Of a stretch of 64,000 nt of DNA, positions 6,727 through 47,420 are shown one piece after another. Below the pieces are notes generated by a model. That model saw nothing but the letters and a program-made list of their open reading frames with translations. It did not search any database and was not told the DNA's origin. Both the position numbers and the translations under genes were made by a program. This DNA comes from Macrostomum lignano (Eukaryota): NCBI GenBank assembly GCA_002269645.1, contig NIVC01001723.1:1-64000 (forward strand), given 5' to 3'. How positions within the stretch are numbered: position 1 is the stretch's first letter; every line of letters starts with the position of its first letter.

Positions 6727-8834
6727 CGCGACCAGGAACGGGTGCCGGAAGTTCTGTGGCTAAGGGGTTATATGTTCCTTCTTGAGCATTGAATTTGTTT
6801 GCTTTGCGCTCAATATTATATCGGACTGATGTTAGTACTGATGCACTCCAATTGGTCAGTTGATCTAGACCAATGGGCCCATCTCATAAATTTTTCGAGT
6901 GTTGCTTCACAATAAGAGAGCGTCTAGAGCGTTTTTCTCCCGTTATAACTACGACAACTTTCATTGCTACTATCAGTAATAACTACTGTTCAGCTTTGCA
7001 AATTTTTTTCTGCAAGTTAGCAAAATACGGTTTTAAATACAAAACTAGCATCGCATTTTGCTTTGGATGCGTAAAGCTATATTTTCTTGATGAAAAAATC
7101 CGGTCTTACTTCCGGTTTCTGACAGAAGGCGTTGATATGCATACCGGATGCAAACTAAACGAACAGAGCTAAAGCACAAAATCTGAACCCGACTGAAAGC
7201 CGAGAATTATGAAGGTTATGAGGCTAGTTAACGAATTTGCTTAAATAAAAGCTTCAATTGAAACGCAAGCTACCTAACTCTGTCTTGCCCGTGTCAGTTG
7301 GCTCAATACATTTATCTATACTATACAGAAAAGCCTATAGAGCTCGGAAATTCGGCAGAATAGACAGCCTAAAAGAGGCAAAGCAAAGAGATCAGATAGG
7401 CAAGACGGATCCAATTAAAAGATCAAAAAGGCTTGAGGCAAGTCAGACAATAGAAGCCAGAAAGCAAGCACAACAATGTAGGTCACAGCGACGAATAGCA
7501 AGAATATAGAAGCCCCTATCCATTCCAGATTAAGACAAAAGCAAGGCGGTTGACACGCGAAGGCAGCCAGGCGGAAAATATTAATGAGCACGACGAATGC
7601 CTGGACCGCAGGTGACCAACCCAAGGAGCGTGGCAACCGAAAGAGCTGTCTCAGCCATCCTGGCAAGTTAAATCTTTGTATCAATTTGTGCTGCAAGTTG
7701 ATTACACTGAGTAAACCGCGATCTCAGATTTTAAGCCCTCTCTAAAAGTGCAGCAGTCACTATGCTAGGCAAGCTCTGGAGTTCGAATACCCGTAGAAAG
7801 TAGATCGATGTTAAGAAGGTTAAGAAGGAAATGAAAAAAATTGAAAGGCTTACAAAGTTTGGATCCTTTGGAATTATCTTCGAAGAGAAATCGGAGAAAT
7901 CGGAGCGGTACACAGCCGTGGAGTGTTGAACTAAAAGAGCTTGTTCGAGAACGGAGAGTCACACTGAGGCTTGTTTAAGTATACGTGACCCCATACAACC
8001 CAAAACCATTTTCTACAGCTGTCAATATTTAGCGCAAATTTTTCCTGTGTCAATATGCCACTGACTGTTAGACCCAGTATTGTGTGTTTTTATTCCTTAG
8101 ATGAAGCACTAAACTTCATTGAGCCATTAGAGAAGAAGTCAAGTAGTTGAGAATTTTACACAGCTAGGTAGAGAGCTATCAAGCCTTCGTCAAGTTTTTT
8201 AACTCAACACTGAAATTTTCTGCACCCCGCAGCTGAGACTAGCATCGCATTGTCGTATTGGGTTTGTAAAGCTAAGAACTCAGTTGAGTCAAGAATCTTT
8301 GGACTTGGTCTGCCGTCCTTCTCTCTATAACTACGAGCGTATTGAAGAAAGTCTAGATTTCTTTGATTCATTAGTTTTATTTAATTAATATAGGTAAAAA
8401 ATAGTACATAGGTGACCAACGAAGGCAGAGCTGATGCAGACACTTGTGGTCGATGTGCTGATGAAGAGAGGCTTGGCAAGGCTGCACAAAGTTGCAGTAC
8501 TGATTGGCGCACGGGGGTTGCATTGAATACACTTGCGCTTATGGAAAAAATCCGACCTTCTGGCAGAATCGTCGAATATCTCAACGGTCGGGAGGGTTGG
8601 CGACTTGGTTCTTCTTTGAGAAAGTGCGCAACAGAAAGTCAGCTCGAGTTCTGGAATTTCTGCGTGCATCCTTGTACGACCTCATCTTTGATATACTAGC
8701 GCCGTTCTTGCTTCCAGCATTTGGTGTGCTAGCAATGAGCAGTTCTCAACTAGGCAAAGAGCACCACAATCTTATATCATAGTCACAAACTCCAATGCCT
8801 ACCTTCGCCAGTAGATTGACTTCCACGTTGCTAG

Positions 8835-9336
8835 AGAGGACAGAAGGGAGAGGAGAGGAGAAGAGAGAGGGGAGAGGAGAGAGAAGAGAATAATAGAGGG
8901 GAGAGGAGAGAAGAGAGGGGAGAGGAAAAAAGAGAGGGTAGTGGAGAGAAAACAAGGGAGAGGAGAGAAGAGAGAGGGGAGAGGAGAGGAGAGAAGAGAG
9001 AGGGGAGAGGAGAGGAGAGAGAGGGGAGAGGAGAGGAGAGAGAGGGGAGAGGAGAGGAGAGAGAGGGGAGAGGAGAGAAGAGAGAGGGGAGAGGAGAGAA
9101 GAGAGAGGGGAGAGGGGAGGAGAGAGAGGGGAGAGGGGAGGAGAGAGAGGGGAGAGGAGAGAAGAGAAAGGAGAGGAGAGAAGAGAGGGGAGAGGAGAGA
9201 AGAAAAGGGAGAGGAGGAGAAGAGAGGGGAGAGGAGAGGAGAGAGAGGAGAGGAGAGAAGAGAAAGGAGAGGAGAGAAGAGAGGGGAGAGGAGAGAAGAG
9301 AGGGGAGAGAAGAGAGAGGAGAGAAGAGAGGGGAGA

Positions 9337-9370
<34 letters not shown>

Positions 9371-9403
9371 GAGAGAAGAGAGAGGAGAGAAGAGAGGGGA
9401 GAC

Positions 9404-9468
<65 letters not shown>

Positions 9469-9469
9469 C

Positions 9470-9501
<32 letters not shown>

Positions 9502-9502
9502 C

Positions 9503-9533
<31 letters not shown>

Positions 9534-9612
9534 GGGAGAAAAGAGAACAGGAGAGAAAAGAAAGGATAGAGAAGCACATGTGGCCCGTGGACCAATGTTT
9601 GCCGACCCCCTG
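8835..9612. mobile_element. Left-truncated copy of the same hAT MITE family with an expanded GA-rich core
   Basis: About 700 bp of polypurine (GGAGA/GAGAA-type units) ending in CACATGTGGCCCG...TTTGCCGACCCCCTG, matching the right end of the 5913-6413 element. Confidence 0.65.
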
Positions 9613-9930: not shown

Positions 9931-10105
9931 GTGAGTCTCAAGTCTCAGTTCCATGCCGGAATCCGCATTGAATTCGACTCGGGCAGCGATGATTGGCCGC
10001 TGCCTACGAATCACTCGGCAGGCGCGTGAATTCTGACTGCATTTAAGCGGAGCAGTGGACTGGCCTCGGGACTGCGAATTTAATGCCTCACTGTCGCAAC
10101 TACAG
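9931..10105 (+). other. Probable 5'-UTR intron of the secreted peptide gene
   Basis: Donor AAGG|GTGAGT at 9931; acceptor ACTACAG| at 10105, five nt before the ATG. Confidence 0.5.
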
Positions 10106-10110
10106 CTAAC

Positions 10111-10468
10111 ATGAAGATTCTATTGGTTGCTATCACCATCTGTCTGTTGGTCTTTGCTGCTACTAGCGCCTCAGCTATTAGCAGGAACCGTCCTCTAGTG
10201 CAGCCGGTTGCCAAGGCGGATCACCTGGCTATCAAGCGACTGGCCAACAGAGTCACTTGTAAGCCGAGCCGTACTAAAGCCGAAGATTCAGTTCAGAAAA
10301 ATCAAGTGAATTCAACACTCTCTCTCCTTGCTTATGCTTTCAGACAGCTGGACATTCGTCTGCAACCTTTACTGCAGGATACTGGGCGGCCGATACTCCC
10401 GGCGCTGCGTCCGCAACTATGCCACCACGGTCTTGGCCGAACGTTGTCCCTGCTTCTGCTATAAATAA
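10111..10468 (+). CDS. Secreted Cys-rich cationic peptide precursor (macin/CS-alpha-beta defensin-like), two coding exons, 90 aa
   Basis: Exon 10111-10258 (signal MKILLVAITICLLVFAATSASA, propeptide ending KR), donor T|GTAAGC, 85-bp intron, acceptor TTTCAG|, exon 10344-10468. The phase-1 join gives LANRVTYSWTFVCNLYCRILGGRYSRRCVRNYATTVLAERCPCFCYK-stop. Confidence 0.7.
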
Positions 10469-11021
10469 CTAATTGGGTAGTGATGTGGCGAATGCCATAG
10501 TTCGCGTTCACGATCGAAGCAATGATTATAAAACTTTTGTTGTGATTAGAAGGTCTGCAAGCCCGATTGCCCGCTTTAAAACTTTGAAATAGACCAAGTT
10601 TTTTAATCCAACATTCGGGAACAACAACAAAATGAGCAAAATCTGTGAAATTTTGGCTTTCGAAGGCTTTATTTAACGGTAACTTGGAAGTCAGTGAAAA
10701 ATTGAAAAATTGAAAAAAAATATTCTACTGCAATTACAGGGAGAAATATTTTATGCCGGAACATTCATATAACTTTTCATTGTTGACATTGTCTGACAAA
10801 CAAAAATTTTATTCAACGAATTCCTTTCAATATCACCCTATATCAGCCTATGTAGAACTAACTGAATGTGGAACCACAGATCATGTACATCACCTGTTCA
10901 GCAATTTTACACGTATTATAACTAATTGGAATTGGAATTCTTTAAAAACAATGCTTGCAACAGAAATCATAGGAACAAAACAATTTTTGCAAATAAACTT
11001 AAAGGGTTTCACCTAGATTGC

Positions 11022-11660
11022 ATGTACAGTACATGGTAACACCAGACAAAAGTACATGGTATCACCAGACACAAGTACATGGTATCACCAGACACAAGTA
11101 CATGGTATCACCAGACACAAGTACATGGTATCACCAGACACAAGTACATGGTATCACCAGACACAAGTACATAGTATCACCAGACACAAGTACATGGTAT
11201 CACTGCACCAGACACAAGTACATGGTATCACCAGACACAAGTACATGGTCTCACTGCACCAGACACAAGTACATGGTATCACTGCACCAGACACAAGTAC
11301 ATGGTATCACTGCACCAGACACAAGTACATGGTATCACCAGACACAAGTACATGAGATCACCAGACACAAGTACATGGTATCACTGCACCAGACACAAGT
11401 ACATGGTATCACCAGACACAAGTACATGGTCTCACTGCACCAGACACAAGTACATGGTATCACCAGACACAAGTACATGGTCTCACTGCACCAGACACAA
11501 GTACATGGTATCACTGCACCAGACACAAGTACATGGTATCACTGCACCAGACACAAGTACATGGTATCACCAGACACAAGTACATGGTATCACCAGACAC
11601 AAGTACATGGTATCACCAGACACAAGTACATTGTATCACTGCACCAGACACAAGTACATG
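11022..11660. repeat. Minisatellite with 23/28-bp units ACCAGACACAAGTACATGGTATC(ACTGC)
   Basis: Direct tandem periodicity; the ORFs here are repeat artefacts. Confidence 0.95.
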
Positions 11661-16300: not shown

Positions 16301-16561
16301 TATCAATAGCATCTATTCCAGTAAAAAGTACAACTGTACTTTAAAGCTAGGCAATTTCCTTTTGGTCAGGCACTTACTTGTCTCCGCCAATTGAACTTTA
16401 CAGTCATCCAACCCACTTGTGCGCACCTGTTCTTGCAATTCCAAATAATTCAATTGCACCCAACATTGTGCAAACTTTTATTGTCCTGTTCATTTCTTCT
16501 CAGACCAGAGCACAGTGCTCAGCTCAGTACTCCGGCATTCTTCGGAATAAAATCTGCAAAT

Positions 16562-18993
16562 ATGAGAAACGACATCAAACGAGCCAGGCGGGGCGGCTCG
16601 CCCCATTCCGTTGAGCCTTCCAAGGTTGTATTCGTTCGCGGCATTCTATCCAATACTAGCGAGCGCGAGGTTCAGCGAGTATTTGAACAGTATGGCGACG
16701 TGAAGTGCGTATTCCTCATACCCAAGCAGCACCAGGCACTGGTGGAATTTGCCACCCTATCCGAGGCTGAACAATTGATTCGCCGAGCGGAATCCGGCGA
16801 ACTTGTGCACATCCGGGATCAGCCAGTTGGCATCGGATTCTCCAAGCAGGCCCGCATCACCGATCCGAACAAACTCTACCTGTCGCACGATCCGACTCGC
16901 ATTCTACTGTTCACCCTGTTCCATATTGAGGTGCAGATTGATTGCGAGACGTTCAGACAAATCTGCGGCCGCTACGGTCGCCTCATGCGAGTCTGCCTAA
17001 CTAAAAACGGCATTGACACGCAGGCTATTGTGGAATTCAGTCGAGTTGAAGAGGCCGCCGAGGCCAAGCCGAATCTTAACGGGGCGGACATCTACGAGAA
17101 TTGCAATACGCTCCGAGTTGAATATGTCACCGAGATGGCCTACGATGTGCTTGCTAGGTTTGCCACCTCTTCTTTCTTAAATGCTGCCTTGTCATCGAGA
17201 GTATTAGTTGCGTGTTGTTTAATAATGGCTTTGTCCATACTTACACGCACGCACACTTTGTGCCAGCGGTTGGTTTGATAACTCCGAAAGCATCTCCATA
17301 ACTTTAGCGATGTTCCTCCGTTCTCTTGTTCGCTTCTTCCTATTTTTGTTTCCATTAAACTGAAAAAGATTATCTATTATCAATTCTACTGTAATTACTA
17401 ACTGACCTCATATGTCAGTTAAATAATTGGTTAATTATTTTAGTTATTAATACTTATTACTATGACTTTTTCTATGGCAGAGATCCGCGCTCGGTTCTGG
17501 ACGAATGGCCGGTTCGAAATCAGCAACGCGAGCTGCCGTTGCCAACGCCGGGCGGCGCGGCGGCTCACAGGTCACGTGACCGGTCCCGATCGCGCTCCCG
17601 GGATCGCTACGGGCCAGCTCCGTCCCGACGGCCCCGACGCTCTCGATCGCCGATTCCTAGCAGTGGCGGCGGCGGCGGCGGCGGCGGCGGCAGCGGCAGT
17701 CGCGACGTGGTGTCGAATTTGATCGGCCTGGCCAGCCAGCTGTCGGACATCCGGGTGCCCGGCCTGGACACCAGAGGCATCATGCAGTACCTGCAGGCCG
17801 CCGCCGCAGCTGCCGCTGTCTCGGAGCATCAGGGCGGAGGCGGCGACAGTCGCAGCGGGCGCCGGTCGCGCAGTCGGGATCGGGCCGGCGACTATCATCG
17901 CGCCAGCAGTAGCGGCGGCGGCGGCCGTCAGCAGTCGGGATCCTCATCTGGCTGCATTCTGTTTCTATGCGGCCTGAGCGACCGGATGAACTGCGACAGG
18001 CTCTTCAATCTGCTGTGCATGTACGGCAACGTGCGCCTGGTCAAGTTCTTTGCTAGCAACACCAACCAGGCCATGGTGGAGATGTCTGATAGGTAAGAAT
18101 TTATACCTGATGTAAAATCAGGCAGAGGCGATTTAAATTAAAAGCGATGTAAAATCGGTAGAATCGGCGTAGATGTCGCTTTTTGACCAAAAAATGCGAC
18201 CTACCTACAAAAAATCCTGAGAAAAATTTACGTAGTTTTTGGTAAACAGTAGGAGTAACTATGACTGTATTATTAACGAAAAATGCCTCGTGATACAATT
18301 AGCATTACGTCTGTACTTTGGATGGGCATTTTTGCGGCTTACCTTGGCTGGGCCCCTCGGCCGGGTGTATGCTCCAGCAAATGTATATTATTTTACTATT
18401 AAAAGCGCAATCAATTCCCAACTACCAACAGGGCCTCCGCCGATATGTGCGTTCGCTTTCTGCACAATCGCACAGTGCTGGGCCGTCGCATTGTGGTGGA
18501 CTATGCGCGTCAGGACTTTCTCAAGAACACGGAGAATCTCACCAACCTGCCGGATGGTACGCCCAGCGTGAAAGACTTCTTCGCTAGGGAGCGCTCGTTA
18601 AATAGGTTTCTAACGCCGGAGAAGGCTCGCAAGAATCACCCCATGGAGCCCTGCACCACCGTGTACTTTTGGGGCGTGCCGCCGGACAGTAACGAGCAGG
18701 ACTTGTGCAACGTGCTGGAGAATCTGGACGCGCCCAGGCCGCACGATGTGTCATTTTTTAATAACCAAGGCATCCGCAGCGGCCTCATGATGTTCGATAA
18801 CGTTCGCGACGCGCTTGACGCCATCTGTCTGGCTAACCATGCCGAAATCACGGTCGGCGGCCGGACCTGCATGCTGAAGCTCACCTTCTCGGAGTCGCGT
18901 AGGCGCGGACCCGACGCTGCCGGCGATAGGAACGGCGGCGGAGGCGGCGGCGGGCGCGGCGGAAGGCCTCGGGGTGGCGGCCGACGACCTTAA
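16562..18993 (+). CDS. HNRNPL: hnRNP L-like RNA-binding protein (four RRMs) with an RS/Gly-rich linker
   Basis: Exons 16562-17157, 17481-18092 and 18432-18993, both junctions phase 2 and in frame. Motifs VVFVRG, QALVEF, LNGADIY..CNTLRVEY, MNCDRLFNLLCMYGNV and HPMEPCTTVYFWGVP match hnRNP L RRM1-4. Confidence 0.85.
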
Positions 18994-20809: not shown

Positions 20810-25619
<4,810 letters not shown>

Positions 25620-26066
25620 TACACGGAGAATATTTTGTCTGAAAAGCTGTTTTACTTTACTCAATCAACTATATTGCAATATATTTAGTTCACAGAATAT
25701 ATATTACAATTTAAATTGATAACAATCAGGAATTTTTATGCCTGTATTGATTCATTATTCATATTTTTATCACATTGTCTGAAGTTGGTATTGTATATTA
25801 AGGAGTGCTTTTTTTACTTCTACCACGTCTGTACTTGTTATCTAGTTCAGTCTCTGCTGTAAGACCAGGTGCGCTTGTTCTTATTTTGCATTTCTACCCT
25901 CTGTTTAATTGCCTTAGCGACGGCTGTTACTAACGCACTAGGCACTACTATGCTCCCTACCGTTTTCTACCTGACTACAAACGCAGTTTTTTATACACCT
26001 TTTTGCTAGTCTATTTATTATTATTGTCTTTGTAATTGAGTTGCTGTGCTAATTTGTCCATTTTTG

Positions 26067-26665
26067 TTTTACATATCAGGATAATGCCTACTTACAGTAG
26101 TTTCCCCTTGCAAAGTTGGCCTAGATTGGTTGCATTCAGCTGTTTTACATATCAGGATAATGCCTACTTACTGTAGTTTCCCCTTGCAAAGTTGGCCTAG
26201 ATTGGTTGCATTCAGCTGTTTTACATATCAGGATAATGCCTACTTACAGTAGTTTCCCCTTGCAAAGTTGGCCTAGATTGGTTGCATTCAGCTGTTTTAC
26301 ATATCAGGATAATGCCTACTTACAGTAGTTTCCCCTTGCAAAGTTGGCCTAGATTGGTTGCATTCAGCTGTTTTACATATCAGGATAATGCCTACTTACA
26401 GTAGTTTCCCCTTGCAAAGTTGGCCTAGATTGGTTGCATTCAGCTGTTTTACATATCAGGATAATGCCTACTTACTGTAGTTTCCCCTTGCAAAGTTGGC
26501 CTAGATTGGTTGCATTCAGCTGTTTTACATATCAGGATAATGCCTACTTACTGTAGTTTCCCCTTGCAAAGTTGGCCTAGATTGGTTGCATTCAGCTGTT
26601 TTACATATCAGGATAATGCCTACTTACAGTAGTTTCCCCTTGCAAAGTTGGCCTAGATTGGTTGC
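26067..26665. repeat. 76-bp tandem repeat, about 8 near-identical copies
   Basis: TTTTACATATCAGGATAATGCCTACTTACAGTAGTTTCCCCTTGCAAAGTTGGCCTAGATTGGTTGCATTCAGCTG. Confidence 0.95.
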
Positions 26666-27069
26666 AGTTTAGACTATTTATTTATTATTTAATTACCTTG
26701 CTTATTTATATAAGCGCCGCGATATTTTTGTTACTACATAGTTCTTTTATTTTGTTTGAAGTGCGTGTGGAATCAAAGTCGCATGCCATATCGTGGATTA
26801 ATTAGTTTTTAAAGAATTTTTTAATACTTGGGTATAAAATAAATAAAAATATCGCTATTAATAAATTTGAATTTCGAGGTTCTATAATAATCCAGCCAAT
26901 TTTTATTTATTTTTTCCAAAAATCTTTTTTTAAGTATAATATAAAAATAAGAGTAAAAATCGAGTCGGGTTTCAGTAGAGCCGATCGGGATGTGAATTAA
27001 GATATTTCTAAGTTGGATTTTGTGCTATAATTTTTTTATTCGTCATATTTCTCATGTTCCAGTTAATTT

Positions 27070-36373: not shown

Positions 36374-37372
36374 TGACTCTCAGATTATTACTGCTGTGAC
36401 TCTCAGATGCTTACTGCTGTGACTCTCAGATTATTACTGCTGTGACTCTCAGATTCTTACTGCTGTGACTCTCAGATTATTACTGCTGTGACTCTCAGAT
36501 TCTTACTGCTGTGACTCTCAGATTATTACTGCTGTGACTCTCAGATTCTTACTGCTGTGACTCTCAGATTATTACTGCTGTGACTCTCAGATTATTACTG
36601 TTGTGACTCTCAGATTATTACTGTTGTGACTCTCAGATTATTACTGTTGTGACTCTCAGATTCTTACTGCTGTGACTCTCAGATTATTACTGCTGTGACT
36701 CTCAGATTATTACTGCTGTGACTCTCAGATTATTACTGTTGTGACTCTCAGATTATTACTGTTGTGACTCTCAGATTATTACTGCTGTGACTCTCAGATG
36801 CTTACTGCTGTGACTCTCAGATTATTACTGCTGTGACTCTCAGATGCTTACTGCTGTGACTCTCAGATGCTTACTGCTGTGACTCTCAGATGCTTACTGC
36901 TGTGACTCTCAGATGCTTACTGTTGTGACCTGTGACTCTCAGATGCTTACTGTTGTGACTCTTAGATGCTTACTGCTGTGACTCTCAGATGCTTACTGTT
37001 GTGACCTGTGACTCTCAGATGCTTACTGTTGTGACTCTCAGATGCTTACTGCTGTGACTCTCAGATGATTACTGTTGTGACTCTCAGATGCTTACTGTTG
37101 TGACTCTCAGATTATTACTGTTGTGACTCTCAGATTATTACTGTTGTGACTCTCAGATTATTACTGCTGTGACTCTCAGATGCTTACTGCTGTGACTCTC
37201 ATCTTTGATCTCTCAGATGCTTACTGTTGTGACTCTCAGATGCTTACTGCTGTGACTCTCAGATGCTTACTGTTGTGACCTGTGACTCAGATGCTTACTG
37301 CTGTGACTCTCAGATGATTACTGCTGTGACTCTCAGATGCTTACTGCTGTGACTCTCAGATGCTTACTGTTG
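36374..37372. repeat. 23-bp minisatellite GTGACTCTCAGATTATTACTGCT between the GLD-2 copies
   Basis: Tandem periodicity. Confidence 0.95.
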
Positions 37373-37564
37373 TTAATTTTAGGTGTGCACTGCTGTCATT
37401 ATTAACTTTATTGCTTTTTGGTCTCAAAGATACCAATGGCCCCTAGTGCTTATAAGCAAAACTATTCACGCGTACAAGCGAGTTGAAAATCAACACAGTT
37501 CTTTACATGGAGTAAATTTTACCCAGTTTGTGCACCGCATTGCAGCCAGCCAGCTGGCCACCAG

Positions 37565-40500
37565 ATGCAGGGCTACGAGCAGACGCTGGCGCTTAGCCAT
37601 TACTACGCTTGGAACTCCTTGGCTGACCTGCTGGGCCGGCAGCCGACCATCACCACAGCTGGTAGCGGCGGCGGCGCCGGCGGAGCTCCTGGCAGCGGCG
37701 GCGCCGGATTCGGCGGCTTTGGCGGCGGCAACCGCCAGCGGCCGGGCCGGGGGGCATCGTTTGGCCGGTTCTACGGCGGCGGCGGGCCGAAACGCGGCGG
37801 CTTCGGGCCCGGCTTTGGCAGCGGCAGGCCCGGCGGCAGTTCTTTGCGATTCCACAGCGCCGGCGGAGGCGGCGCGAGACAGTCTATGGAAATACCGCCG
37901 CCGCCGCCGCCACCACCACCGCCTCAGCAGCAACCCAACGGGGTGAGTGTGGCGGCAGGCATAGCTGGATCCCATAGTCGATCGTTTTTATGCTTTTTCG
38001 CCAGCCTATTTGACCCACGAGACCACCATTGACCTTTATTTCATCCACCGACCGTCTTTAACCTACGACCAAGGTCTTTGACCCACCATTTACGGTCTTT
38101 GACCCACCACCGACGGTTTCTGACTCACCACTGAGGTCTTTGACCCACCGCCGACACTTTGACCCACCGCCGACACTTTGACCCACCGCCGACACTTTGA
38201 CCCATTGCCGACACTTTGACCCACCGCCGACGGTTTCTGACTCGCCACTGAGGTCTTTGACCCACCGTCGACACTTTGACCCGCCACCGAATCTCTTTGA
38301 CCCGCCACCGACACTTTGACCTGCCACCGACTCTCTTTGACCCACCACCGATGCTTTGACCCGCCACCGACACTTTGACCCGGCACCGACACTTTGACTC
38401 GTCACCGACACTTTGACCCGCCACCGATGCTTTGACCCGCCACCGACACTTTGACCCACCACCGATGCTTTGACCCGTCACCGACACTTTGACCCGCCGC
38501 CGATACTTTGACCCACCGCCGACTATCTTTGACCCATTGCCGACACTTTGACCCGCCACTGATGCTTTGACCCGCCACCGACACTTTGACCCGCCACCGA
38601 CTCTCTTTGACCCACCGCCGATACTTTGACCCACCACTGACTCTCTTTGACCCACCGCCGACACTTTGACCCATCACCGACATTTGGACCCACCATTGAG
38701 TTCTTTGACCCATCACCGTTACTTGGACCCACCATTGAGTTCTTTGACCCATCACCGACACTTTGACCCACCGCCGACACTTTGACCCATCGCCGACACT
38801 TTGATCCACAATTGAGCTCCTTAACCCACAGCTGACTCTCTTTGACCTGCCGCCGATACTTTGACCCACCACCGACACTTTGACCCACCACCGATGCTTT
38901 GACCCGCCACCGACACTTTGACCCGCCACCGACTCTTTGACCCGCCACCAACACTTAGACCCGCCACCGACACTTTGACCCAACACCGACTCTCTTTGAC
39001 CCGCCACCGACACTTTGACCCACCACCGATGCTTTGACCCGCCACCGACACTTTGACCCGCCACCGACACTTTGACTCGTCACCGACACTTTGACCCGCC
39101 ACCGATGCTTTGACTCGCCACCGACACTTTGACCCACCACCGATGCTTTGACCCGCCACCGACACTTTGACCCGCCACCGACACTTTGACCCATCGCCGA
39201 CACTTTGATCCACAATTGAGTTCCTTAACCCACCGCTGACTCTCTTTGACCCGCCACCGACACTTTGACCCGCCACCAACACTTTGACCCGCCACCGACA
39301 CTTTGACCTGCCACCGACTCTCTTTGACCCGCCACCGACACTTTGACCCGCCACCGACACTTTGACCTGTCACCGACTCTCTTTGACCCGCCGCCGATAC
39401 TTTGACCCACCGCTGACTCTCTTTGACCCGCCACCGACACTTTGATCCTTTGATCCACCACCAGCACTTTGATCCACCACCGACACTTTGACCTGCCACT
39501 GACTCTCTTTGACCCGCCACCGATACTTTGACCCACCGCTGACTCTCTTTGACCCGCCACCGACACTTTGATCCACCACCGACACTTTGACCCGCCACCG
39601 ACACTTTGATCCACCACCGACACTTTGACCCGCCACCGACACTTTGATCCACCACCGACACTTTGACCCGCCACCGACACTTTGACCTGCCACCGACTCT
39701 CTTTGACCCGCCGCTGATACTTTGACCCACCGCTGACTCTCTTTGACCCGCCACCGACACTTTGATCCACCACCGACACTTTGACCCGCCACCGACACTT
39801 TGACCCGCCACCGACACTTTGACCTGCCACCGACTCTCTTTGACCCGCCGCTGATACTTTGACCCACCGCTGACTCTCTTTGACCCGCCACCGACACTTT
39901 GATCCACCACCGACACTTTGATCCACCACCGACACTTTGACCGCCACCGACACTTTGACCCGCCACCGACACTTTGACCTGCCACCGACTCTCTTTGACC
40001 CGCCGCTGATACTTTGACCCACCGCTGACTCTCTTTGACCCGCCACCGACACTTTGATCCACCACCGACACTTTGACCCGCCACCGACACTTTGACCTGC
40101 CACCGACTCTCTTTGACCCGCCGCCGATACTTTGACCCACCACCGATGCTTTGACCCGCCACCGACACTTTGATCCACCACCGACACTTTGACCGCCACC
40201 GACACTTTGATCCAAAATTGAGTTCATTAACCCACCGTCGACTCTATTTGACCCACCGCAGTTGCCTCCCCAGGCGCCCCAGCTGCCGCCGCCAGCTACC
40301 CTATCATCCTCGCCAGCGGATTCGATGGCGGCCTACGCCGAATGGAACTCTGGCCGAATCTGGCAGCTATTTGTTGAGAAACGCCAAACCGACGCCACCT
40401 ACGAGAGGAAGCTGATGCTCAGAGACGCCCTGCTGTCAGTTGTGTCCGCTTCGTTTCACTCGGCCGGCCTGTTTATTGTGGGCTCGTCTATGAATGGATT

Positions 40501-45248: not shown

Positions 45249-46450
<1,202 letters not shown>

Positions 46451-47420
46451 ATAAGATAGACAGACAGGCAGACAGAACAACAACAGACTCAATCGCACTG
46501 GCTCCGAGTACTGTACTGTACGAGATGAGTCTACTCTATACGGCATATAGTAAGTCGCTAACCTTAGCAGGGCACCTGAATAAACTCTAACCGAGAGCCA
46601 ACGTGCTCAATCTACGGTAGTGTAACTAATAAACAGTTAGGAGAAGTTGATTGTGCAGATGTACGCTTGCTCGTTCATTGCATATTTTGTACATGGCAAC
46701 CAGGTGTGCAGGATTGATTTATGATATAAAGTTGAAAACAACTCTAGCGCGCTCTCAAGCAACCGAGCGGCGGAGACCGATCGGGCGTCAATCTTCATTG
46801 TAAGGTTTGGTAAGTAAAAATCAGACATTAGGTTAGAGTCCAGTTTTACAATGCCTATTGTAATAGTTTGTTTGAGCCGGCTTGACCCCAGAAGAGACCA
46901 GCCAAATCACTCGAAAGTCGACTCCAAGCAGCAGTAAGATAGCAGGGAGCCTCAACATTGGCCCAGCGGGTTTGAATCGGCACAAAAATTTACTATAAAC
47001 TTTTCCCATATCTCAAGGTAGTAGAACCAAGGCGCACCTTTGGGTGTGTGCGCGTGCGTGTTTCATTGAGAGATAGGGCCAGCAGAGATAAGGTAGGCAC
47101 CTGCTGCGCAGTGAGCAGTTTAAAATGCCCGAGTCAATCGATTATTTCTGATCACCAGCCTTGCGCGTGTTCCGCCCCCCCCCCCTAGGCAGGTAGATAA
47201 GCAACGCGGCGCTCCCCAGGTCAAAGAGACTGTCACGTGCTTCCGATTGCACAGTTTGATAATGCCGAGTATTTGACTCGATAAGAAATGTCTAACAGGT
47301 TGCTCGCTTTACAACCCAATTACATGTAGGTGTCTTTACTACTTCTCTGAATCTCCCGAGCTGCCTCTAGCGGGACCAGTTTAGTTCGCACTTCCTTCTA
47401 CGATCGCTACTTCTGGCCCG

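Follow-up and report, generated by a model that had tools for sequence, protein, structure and literature searches.

Does a short locus of the flatworm Macrostomum lignano, which a bacterial-style list of open reading frames (ORFs) gives as one uninterrupted frame, encode a spliced gene for a small secreted peptide, and, if it does, what kind of peptide is it? The locus occupies positions 10111-10468 of the window, that is, of the whole stretch of 64,000 nucleotides analyzed here (positions 1 to 64,000 of contig NIVC01001723.1, forward strand). A preliminary description of this DNA had proposed that a hidden two-exon gene at the locus encodes a truncated macin-like antimicrobial or toxin peptide. 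We found that positions 10087-10545 of the forward strand are a copy of the gene Mlig016290, which has two exons and is transcribed and spliced at 10258/10344. The gene belongs to an uncharacterised orphan family of secreted cysteine-rich peptides, possibly with a non-canonical Cys array of the defensin type.

Gene structure and precursor

The coding sequence starts with the ATG at 10111. The donor at 10259 (ctt/GTAAGC, with the slash marking the cut) is followed by an acceptor that ends at 10343, reads ...GCTTTCAG and is preceded by a pyrimidine-rich tract. When 10111-10258 is joined to 10344-10468, the result is a 273-nucleotide (nt) in-frame coding sequence for a prepropeptide of 90 amino acids (aa), which consists of MKILLVAITICLLVFAATSASA, ISRNRPLVQPVAKADHLAIKR and LANRVTYSWTFVCNLYCRILGGRYSRRCVRNYATTVLAERCPCFCYK and ends at the stop codon. 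The features of the gene, including the untranslated regions (UTRs), are as follows.

9991-10047, + strand: putative core promoter, with an inverted CCAAT (GATTGGC) at 9991-9997, GCGCGTGA at 10022-10029 and a TATA-like TTTAAG at 10042-10047
10087-10110, + strand: 5' UTR, minimum extent; the transcript-derived ORFs of PAA73604.1 and PAA52855.1 read across GTCGCAACTACAGCTAAC ahead of the ATG
10111-10176, + strand: signal peptide of 22 aa (MKILLVAITICLLVFAATSASA) with predicted cleavage after SASA, recognized by inspection
10177-10239, + strand: propeptide of 21 aa (ISRNRPLVQPVAKADHLAIKR) with the dibasic K42-R43 at its end, from the family alignment; probable cleavage site
10240-10258, + strand: start of the mature peptide (LANRVT plus base 1 of the Tyr50 codon) and end of exon 1, from the splice model and tblastn of exon 1
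10259-10343, + strand: intron of 85 nt, phase 1, GTAAGC...TTTCAG; its removal reproduces the database proteins exactly
10344-10468, + strand: coding part of exon 2, with the rest of the Tyr50 codon, the complete six-Cys domain (SWTFVCNLYCRILGGRYSRRCVRNYATTVLAERCPCFCYK) and the TAA at 10466-10468
10469-10545, + strand: putative 3' UTR, with a possible poly(A) signal variant TATAAA at 10527-10532, from the sequence only

The precursor has the layout of a convertase-processed protein, with an N-terminal signal peptide and a conserved dibasic site ahead of a Cys-rich peptide. By inspection, the signal peptide has a charged n-region (MK), a hydrophobic core of 15 residues and S-A-S-A before the cut, with small residues at -3 and -1. 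The mature part has 47 aa and 5.6 kDa, is rich in Arg and Tyr, and has a pI of 9.5 and a net charge of +7 (7 Arg and 1 Lys versus 1 Glu). Its six Cys residues are spaced C-x3-C-x10-C-x12-C-x-C-x-C. The order of signal peptide, propeptide, KR and 47-aa mature peptide, the six Cys with CxxxC and CxC, and the charge count had all been given in the preliminary description and were borne out; the KR is invariant in the family described below.

The 90-aa product is 100% identical to the UniProt entry A0A1I8GG96 ('Secreted protein', Macrostomum lignano). The GenBank protein PAA73604.1 (BOX15_Mlig016290g1, Macrostomum lignano) is identical over the 90 residues of the product, and PAA52855.1 (Mlig016290 g2) has 98% identity to it. 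Both GenBank proteins are marked 'partial' and begin with LTVATTAN-M and VATTAN-M, respectively, since their ORFs extend into the 5' UTR, as expected of transcript-derived ORFs. The sources of the Mlig_3_7 annotation were RNA-seq data, processed with StringTie/TACO, and a de novo transcriptome that had been mapped (PMC5730564). The proposed junction is in effect supported by this RNA-seq-based annotation, which uses the same splice. The word 'hidden' did not hold, as both GenBank and UniProt already carry the gene, with its product called a hypothetical or secreted protein.

We also compared window positions 1-20316 with the GenBank scaffolds that carry Mlig016290 (about 10 kb compared). NIVC01001003.1 had 98.2% identity to the window and NIVC01003175.1 had 96.4%, and the repeat arrays showed numerous indels. 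The 3' UTR stretch 10469-10545 has 98% identity in the homeologous copy. The window locus is a third homeologous copy, a haplotype or a different assembly of the neopolyploid M. lignano genome. The intron has 85 nt in the window and 87 nt in both GenBank copies, and the difference is a 2-bp (CT)n indel within 10259-10343. Since an indel of 2 bp would be tolerable only in an intron, its confinement to this stretch is consistent with the splice model.

The ORF list runs across the intron as a 117-aa ORF (10111-10464) and lists the Cys-rich exon 2 separately, in another frame, as a 46-aa ORF with a TTG start (10328-10468). Because the list reads through the intron in this way, the earlier claim that the ORF track mistranslates the gene is correct. 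If the unspliced 117-aa ORF were the true product, or if the locus were not transcribed, the frame that stays open through the intron in the window copy would be accounted for. However, the unspliced frame would not be kept with the intron of both GenBank copies, which is 2 bp longer, the splice is used in the annotated proteins derived from transcripts, the paralogs have the intron in common, and the read-through tail has no conserved features; we consider the chance of an unspliced or silent locus negligible. The alternative donors that had been named as possible refutations do not offer a better choice: the one at 10271 keeps the frame, but it is weak (GTACTA) and would add a seventh, odd Cys, and the one at 10306 is out of frame. 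The gene model and the secreted prepropeptide are thus close to certain. Bacterial-style ORF tracks mistranslate small two-exon genes for eukaryotic peptides of this kind, and the RNA-seq-based annotation had already caught Mlig016290.

A family of three loci in M. lignano

A HMMER scan of 1.84 billion protein cluster representatives (E<=0.001) returned only two further proteins, both from M. lignano: Mlig033545 (93 aa, E 7.7e-18) and Mlig029134 (93 aa, E 1.4e-15). These paralogous loci have 52-58% identity to the Mlig016290 product. A profile search of a collection of 5.8 billion proteins found the same three M. lignano clusters and nothing else, and a word-indexed search of the 5.8 billion proteins with the single sequence found only M. 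lignano loci. Scanning of metagenome contigs with family patterns gave 152 pattern matches, none of which was confirmed. Neither the precursor, its mature part or exon 2 nor three paralogs matched a relevant family in Pfam, the lone match being a spurious one to Peptidase_C3G (E 0.17), and Rfam gave no match on the window. With tblastn, no tandem copies were detected in the window or at the paralog loci, and each locus is solitary. In the data searched, Mlig016290, Mlig033545 and Mlig029134 form a three-locus family that occurs only in M. lignano.

In an alignment of six sequences from the three paralog groups, the signal-peptide layout, K42-R43-L44, Y50, W52, G64, Y67, all six Cys and the segment E82-R83-C-P-C were invariant. 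Apart from the Cys, the family is most conserved in a stretch of the propeptide, ISRN.PL..P.A..H.A.KR. Between the C-P-C and the last Cys there is one residue in the window gene (CPCFCYK), against two in the paralogs (CPCYSC, CPCHSC). In each of the three groups, the only intron is of phase 1 and splits the invariant Tyr50 codon (T/AC), with GTAAG donors and T-rich acceptors ending in CAG; its length is 106 nt in Mlig033545 and 85 nt in Mlig029134. Because the paralogs share this phase-1 intron in the Tyr50 codon, the choice of 10258/10344 with GTAAGC and TTTCAG, which had been proposed from the window alone and gives a product identical to the database proteins, is independently validated.

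We then estimated the ratio of nonsynonymous to synonymous substitution rates (dN/dS) between the paralogs. Taken overall, the ratio was 0.36-0.55; it was 0.17-0.24 for the propeptide and 0.32-0.75 for the mature part, with few sites. The nucleotide identity of exon 2 among the paralogs (0.66-0.73) was not above that of the intron (0.60-0.75), which suggested that exon 2 is evolving about as fast as the intron. Since the paralog loci can be aligned at 60-75% throughout, introns included, the duplications appear to be fairly recent. A conserved signal peptide and pro-region, a fast-evolving mature part and fixed Cys residues are typical of secreted effectors such as toxins, antimicrobial peptides and reproductive proteins.

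The putative promoter at 9991-10047 lies about 40 nt upstream of the annotated 5' end of the transcript. Alignment of the upstream regions showed that the promoter-proximal blocks GATTGGC, GGCAGGCGCGTGA and TATTTAAG are invariant across all three paralog groups. These blocks may be promoter elements. Their conservation was dropped as evidence for co-regulation, because the paralog loci are alignable throughout.

Cysteine framework and candidate folds

The mature peptide shares several traits with defensins, which are likewise small, cationic and secreted, are made as prepropeptides and carry a CxxxC followed at a distance by a CxC. We used AlphaFold2 to predict whether the Cys-rich domain could adopt the CS-alpha-beta (cysteine-stabilized alpha-beta) fold of such peptides. 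For the mature part, with an alignment of five sequences, the best model had a mean predicted local distance difference test (pLDDT) score of 75.5 and showed a helix over WTFVCNLYCRIL together with short helical turns; the other four models ranged from a pLDDT of 69 down to 40. For the propeptide and mature part together, the mean pLDDT was 58, and the model had, at this low confidence, the same helix and two strands, the last of which lay over the C-terminal Cys cluster (E64-67). In both models, C56-x3-C60 is predicted to lie within the helix (residues 9-20 of the 47-mer and 30-40 of the 68-mer). The C-P-C to which such a helix could be bonded is itself invariant in the family. When both models were compared with the PDB by Foldseek, tamapin and the CD4 mimics built on the scyllatoxin scaffold, the smallest CS-alpha-beta proteins, were found at or near the top.

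The family profile was also aligned by hhalign with a defensin alignment built from the PDB matches to mussel MGD-1, namely MGD-1 (1fjn), oyster defensin (2b68), micasin (2lr5) and BmKDfsin3 (5xa6). The probability was 70.8%, and all six Cys of the family fell on defensin Cys (in the reference array, C3, C4, C6, C8, C9 and C10). In this alignment, the spacing of 10 from Cys to Cys between the helix and the beta2 position is that of MGD-1. The further Cys of the paralogs, two residues after the CxC, is placed exactly as in mollusc defensins ending in ...RCTCYRC or ...RCTCTDC. On the other hand, the family is unlike defensins in that it lacks the N-terminal Cys (C2), the loop Cys (C5) and the GxC, and it has an insert of 12-14 residues before the CxC and a Pro between the two C-terminal Cys.

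Because C2 and C5 are missing, the C2-C6 and C5-C10 bonds cannot form, and a bond of the C6-C10 type must be assumed. A precedent for a non-canonical six-Cys array is the nematode ASABF-6Cys-alpha, a six-Cys CS-alpha-beta peptide in which the missing Cys are not a bonded pair and a rewired disulfide was proposed (PMC5116183). ASABF-6Cys-alpha keeps C3-C6, C8 and C9, while the M. lignano family keeps C3, C4, C6, C8, C9 and C10; it comes from another phylum, and no sequence similarity to it was detected in the HMMER and profile searches with the family. A CS-alpha-beta-like fold, in which the CxxxC of the helix would be stapled to the C-P-C and the third bond would be rewired, is a reasonable model, to which we give slightly less than an even chance.

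Several results weigh against this fold. The better AlphaFold2 model has no beta-sheet, and the strand over the C-terminal Cys appeared only in the model with a pLDDT of 58 and not in that with a pLDDT of 75.5. The five models of each run disagreed with one another, and the alignments held just 5-6 sequences. The Foldseek matches had E values of 5-8 and probabilities below 0.1 and were not significant. A local rerun of hhalign gave a probability of 21%, and 2% of shuffles with fixed Cys columns scored higher (p=0.02), which is marginal with two targets tested. Searches of the PDB sequences with the single sequence and with profiles gave no relevant match, and no family member had a significant match to the Pfam models Defensin_2, Gamma-thionin, toxin, macin or ShK. 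The canonical third disulfide from an N-terminal Cys to beta2 (C2-C6) is excluded by the lack of a Cys upstream of the CxxxC, and the GxC motif is missing, with the beta2-position Cys preceded by RR, RY or SR.

The preliminary description had assigned the peptide to a different branch of the CS-alpha-beta proteins, as a truncated macin (hydramacin, theromacin, neuromacin) without the N-terminal Cys pair. The hydramacin fragment quoted there is real and corresponds to residues 27-60 of PDB 2k35_A, in which Cys residues occupy positions 5, 12, 27, 31, 41, 48, 57 and 59. A BLASTP comparison of the mature peptide with this fragment aligned CN..C..LG...C...C.CY with 15 bits, 11 identities in 35 positions (31%; 5 of them Cys) and an E value of 0.014 for a single comparison. 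The score of the window peptide was above 99% of those of Cys-fixed shuffles (p=0.01). However, the two paralogs scored at chance (p=0.10 and 0.53), the family profile gave p=0.21 against a Cys-framework null, and the paralogs do not keep the residues shared with hydramacin outside the Cys (N, L and the terminal Y). HMMER searches of the PDB sequences, in which the queries were the single sequence and a pair of family profiles, did not match 2k35 even at E<=10. Such tests have low power for peptides of this kind: with the C-terminal half of hydramacin as the query, no other solved macin in the PDB was returned at E<=10, nor was any Pfam macin model, and theromacin, which we take to be PDB 2LN8, was not among the matches. 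The macin comparison was made with the hydramacin fragment itself and with the defensin alignment described above.

Macins have 8-12 Cys and, as their defining feature, a fourth disulfide, which in the reference array for CS-alpha-beta peptides joins C1 and C7 (Tarr 2016, PMC5116183). Their length is above 60 residues, and they possess a further alpha-helix at the N-terminus and are arranged like a knottin (PMC6780910). The window peptide is cationic and secreted like the macins (2k35, theromacin, neuromacin and the mytimacins) and has a CxxxC...CxC of the CS-alpha-beta type, and the window paralog alone has the CN..C..LG and the C-terminal C.CY of hydramacin. It is unlike them in having six Cys, none of which is N-terminal of the CxxxC, so that a partner for C1-C7 is missing, and in having only 47 residues, of which residues 1-8 are disordered in the AlphaFold model, where the CxxxC helix is the only one and the extra N-terminal helix is missing. 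When the family was aligned through the invariant ERCPC..C of the paralogs, the extra C-terminal Cys fell on C10 of mollusc and nematode peptides rather than on C7 of macins. The quoted fragment was therefore correct, but the term 'macin-like' was not supported, as the resemblance is limited to the window paralog and the peptide has only six Cys. Judged from these sequence comparisons, macin homology is not supported and appears very unlikely, and we do not classify the gene among the macins.

Another assignment is found in UniProt, where the Mlig033545 product (A0A267ER24) is named 'ShKT domain-containing protein'. A ShKT (ShK-toxin-like) domain is also small and secreted with six Cys, and this reading would agree with the C-terminal C-x2-C of the paralogs and with the helical, sheet-free AlphaFold2 model of higher confidence. 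ShKT domains follow the pattern C4-x3-C5-x2-C6 with a long C1-C2 interval, which the family spacing, C-x3-C-x10-C-x12/14-C-x-C-x1/2-C, does not fit. In addition, Pfam PF01549 was silent at E<=10 for four family sequences, there was no ShK-like structure among the Foldseek matches, and the near-identical sister of A0A267ER24 and other family members carry no ShKT label and are named 'uncharacterized' or 'secreted'. The label on A0A267ER24 looks like a borderline automatic assignment, and it is highly improbable that the family contains a ShKT domain.

Possible functions and genomic surroundings

For the CS-alpha-beta-like peptide, the following mechanism can be proposed. The precursor would enter the endoplasmic reticulum, where the 22-aa signal peptide would be removed, and a subtilisin-like proprotein convertase would cut after the invariant K42-R43 to produce the 47-aa, 5.6-kDa peptide with a net charge of +7. 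Two disulfides would staple the CxxxC of the helix to the invariant C-P-C close to the C-terminus, as in a CS-alpha-beta-type staple, and the remaining loop Cys (RRC) would pair with the last Cys, giving a six-Cys arrangement (C3, C4, C6, C8, C9, C10) that is non-canonical in Tarr's array. The peptide would then be secreted and act outside the cell, most probably as a cationic host-defence (antimicrobial) effector. As a whole, this mechanism of a convertase-processed, disulfide-stapled extracellular effector with a probable part in host defence is credible, and we hold it tentatively. An antimicrobial or host-defence role is rated highest among the roles considered here, and on the present analysis it may apply, with considerable doubt. 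The full proposal, that the three Mlig loci are an uncharacterised host-defence family of the defensin type (CS-alpha-beta), with a CxxxC-CPC staple and a bond from beta2 to the C-terminus in place of the N-terminal bond, is unlikely to hold in all its parts.

If the proposal is true, free-living Platyhelminthes would have in it their first described family of defensin-like antimicrobial peptides, and the CS-alpha-beta repertoire would be extended by a non-canonical six-Cys array. Few effector molecules of flatworm innate immunity have been described, and Platyhelminthes are mentioned neither in a review of worm antimicrobial peptides (PMC6780910) nor in a survey of CS-alpha-beta peptides (PMC5116183). 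A confirmed defensin-like family would be directly testable, as M. lignano is a transgenic model that is amenable to RNA interference.

Three further points tell against host defence. The mature part has a net charge of +7 in the window gene; for Mlig033545 the value is +5 or +3 and for Mlig029134 about +1 (the last by hand count), so that strong cationicity is a trait of the window paralog and not of the family. The propeptide is more conserved than the supposedly active mature part. Nothing on expression, induction or tissue came from the literature: no full text that could be searched contained the gene ids, the accessions or the peptide strings, and none of the three gene ids was found in the searchable supplementary tables of M. 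lignano papers, reproduction-focused ones included, many of which were covered in part.

The charge variation would also agree with a lineage-specific secretory-gland product unrelated to immunity, such as a prostate seminal-fluid, egg-shell, cement-gland, adhesive or mucus protein, in which Cys and Tyr would serve folding or cross-linking. The family is known only from M. lignano in the searched data and evolves fast, with an exon 2 identity no higher than that of the intron and a mature-part dN/dS that reaches the upper value given above. The peptides are rich in Tyr (the two copies of Mlig016290 have 4-5 and Mlig033545 has 7), and reproduction-related genes of Macrostomum are reported as rapidly evolving (PMC7336406). 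However, the absence of the three gene ids from the searchable tables, the reproduction-focused ones included and many of them covered in part, speaks against a gland product, and the conserved propeptide with its KR site and the constant six-Cys mini-domain are more in keeping with a bioactive, folded peptide than with a structural material. We consider a gland product somewhat unlikely.

The constraint on the pro-region, which has the lowest dN/dS of the precursor, and the succession of a signal peptide, a conserved linear peptide, an invariant KR and a Cys-rich tail could also indicate a precursor of the prohormone or neuropeptide type. In such a precursor, either the 19-residue N-terminal peptide would be bioactive, with the Cys-rich part as a carrier in the style of neurophysin, or the Cys-rich peptide would itself be the ligand. 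The peripheral nervous system is the site of expression of a scorpion-toxin-like peptide of flatworms, Schistosoma SmKK7 (PMC4361651). However, the M. lignano precursor has no Gly before the KR for amidation and only a single dibasic site, it has no relatives in other flatworm proteomes of the searched databases, which would be unusual for a neuropeptide, and three divergent paralogs with variable mature parts are more effector-like. A role as a prohormone is improbable. If the family were of the reproductive-gland or neuropeptide-like kind, it would be one more lineage-restricted, fast-evolving family of secreted peptides, of local interest only.

SmKK7 (PMC4361651) is likewise the flatworm precedent for an ion-channel-directed, toxin-like peptide on the short scorpion-toxin CS-alpha-beta scaffold, which could serve defence or neuromodulation. 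The window peptide is small and basic with six Cys, and tamapin and the scyllatoxin-scaffold miniproteins, with the minimal helix-plus-hairpin six-Cys scaffold that is also proposed for it, were the top structural neighbours of both models, with the insignificant E values given above. The short scorpion K+-channel toxins differ from the window peptide, which is longer (47 versus about 31 aa) and has a large loop and no sequence homology to them, and the Pfam families of short and long scorpion toxins were unmatched. We know of no venom apparatus in M. lignano, which is cultured on diatoms. A channel-directed toxin is a distinctly improbable function.

The neighbours of the gene were inferred from calls on the near-identical GenBank loci. 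The upstream neighbour, at about 161-1860 on the reverse strand, appears to encode a large Cadherin_3/Calx-beta/C-type-lectin protein, and the downstream neighbour, at about 16518-18993 on the forward strand, a 596-aa multi-RRM protein resembling PTB and hnRNP-L; neither has an obvious functional link to the peptide gene.

Repeat arrays lie on both sides of the gene. About 540 bp upstream, a purine-only microsatellite, (AGAGAGG)n, has about 106 copies and a GC skew of +0.42 at 8833-9571 and yields three long spurious ORFs of 308, 254 and 225 aa. About 560 bp downstream, at 11028-11639, a 23-bp minisatellite (AGTACATGGTATCACCAGACACA) has about 25 copies with a higher-order period of 232 bp and yields a spurious repetitive ORF of 235 aa. 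The peptide gene sits alone between such arrays, and at least 20 minisatellite arrays are present across 19666-59157. The following are examples of the arrays in this part of the window.

21715-22969: minisatellite, 20 bp x64
26065-26666: minisatellite, 76 bp x8, 99% identical
36374-37373: minisatellite, 23 bp
38138-40210: minisatellite, 19 bp x106, GC skew -0.47
45249-46464: (ATAG)x303 array

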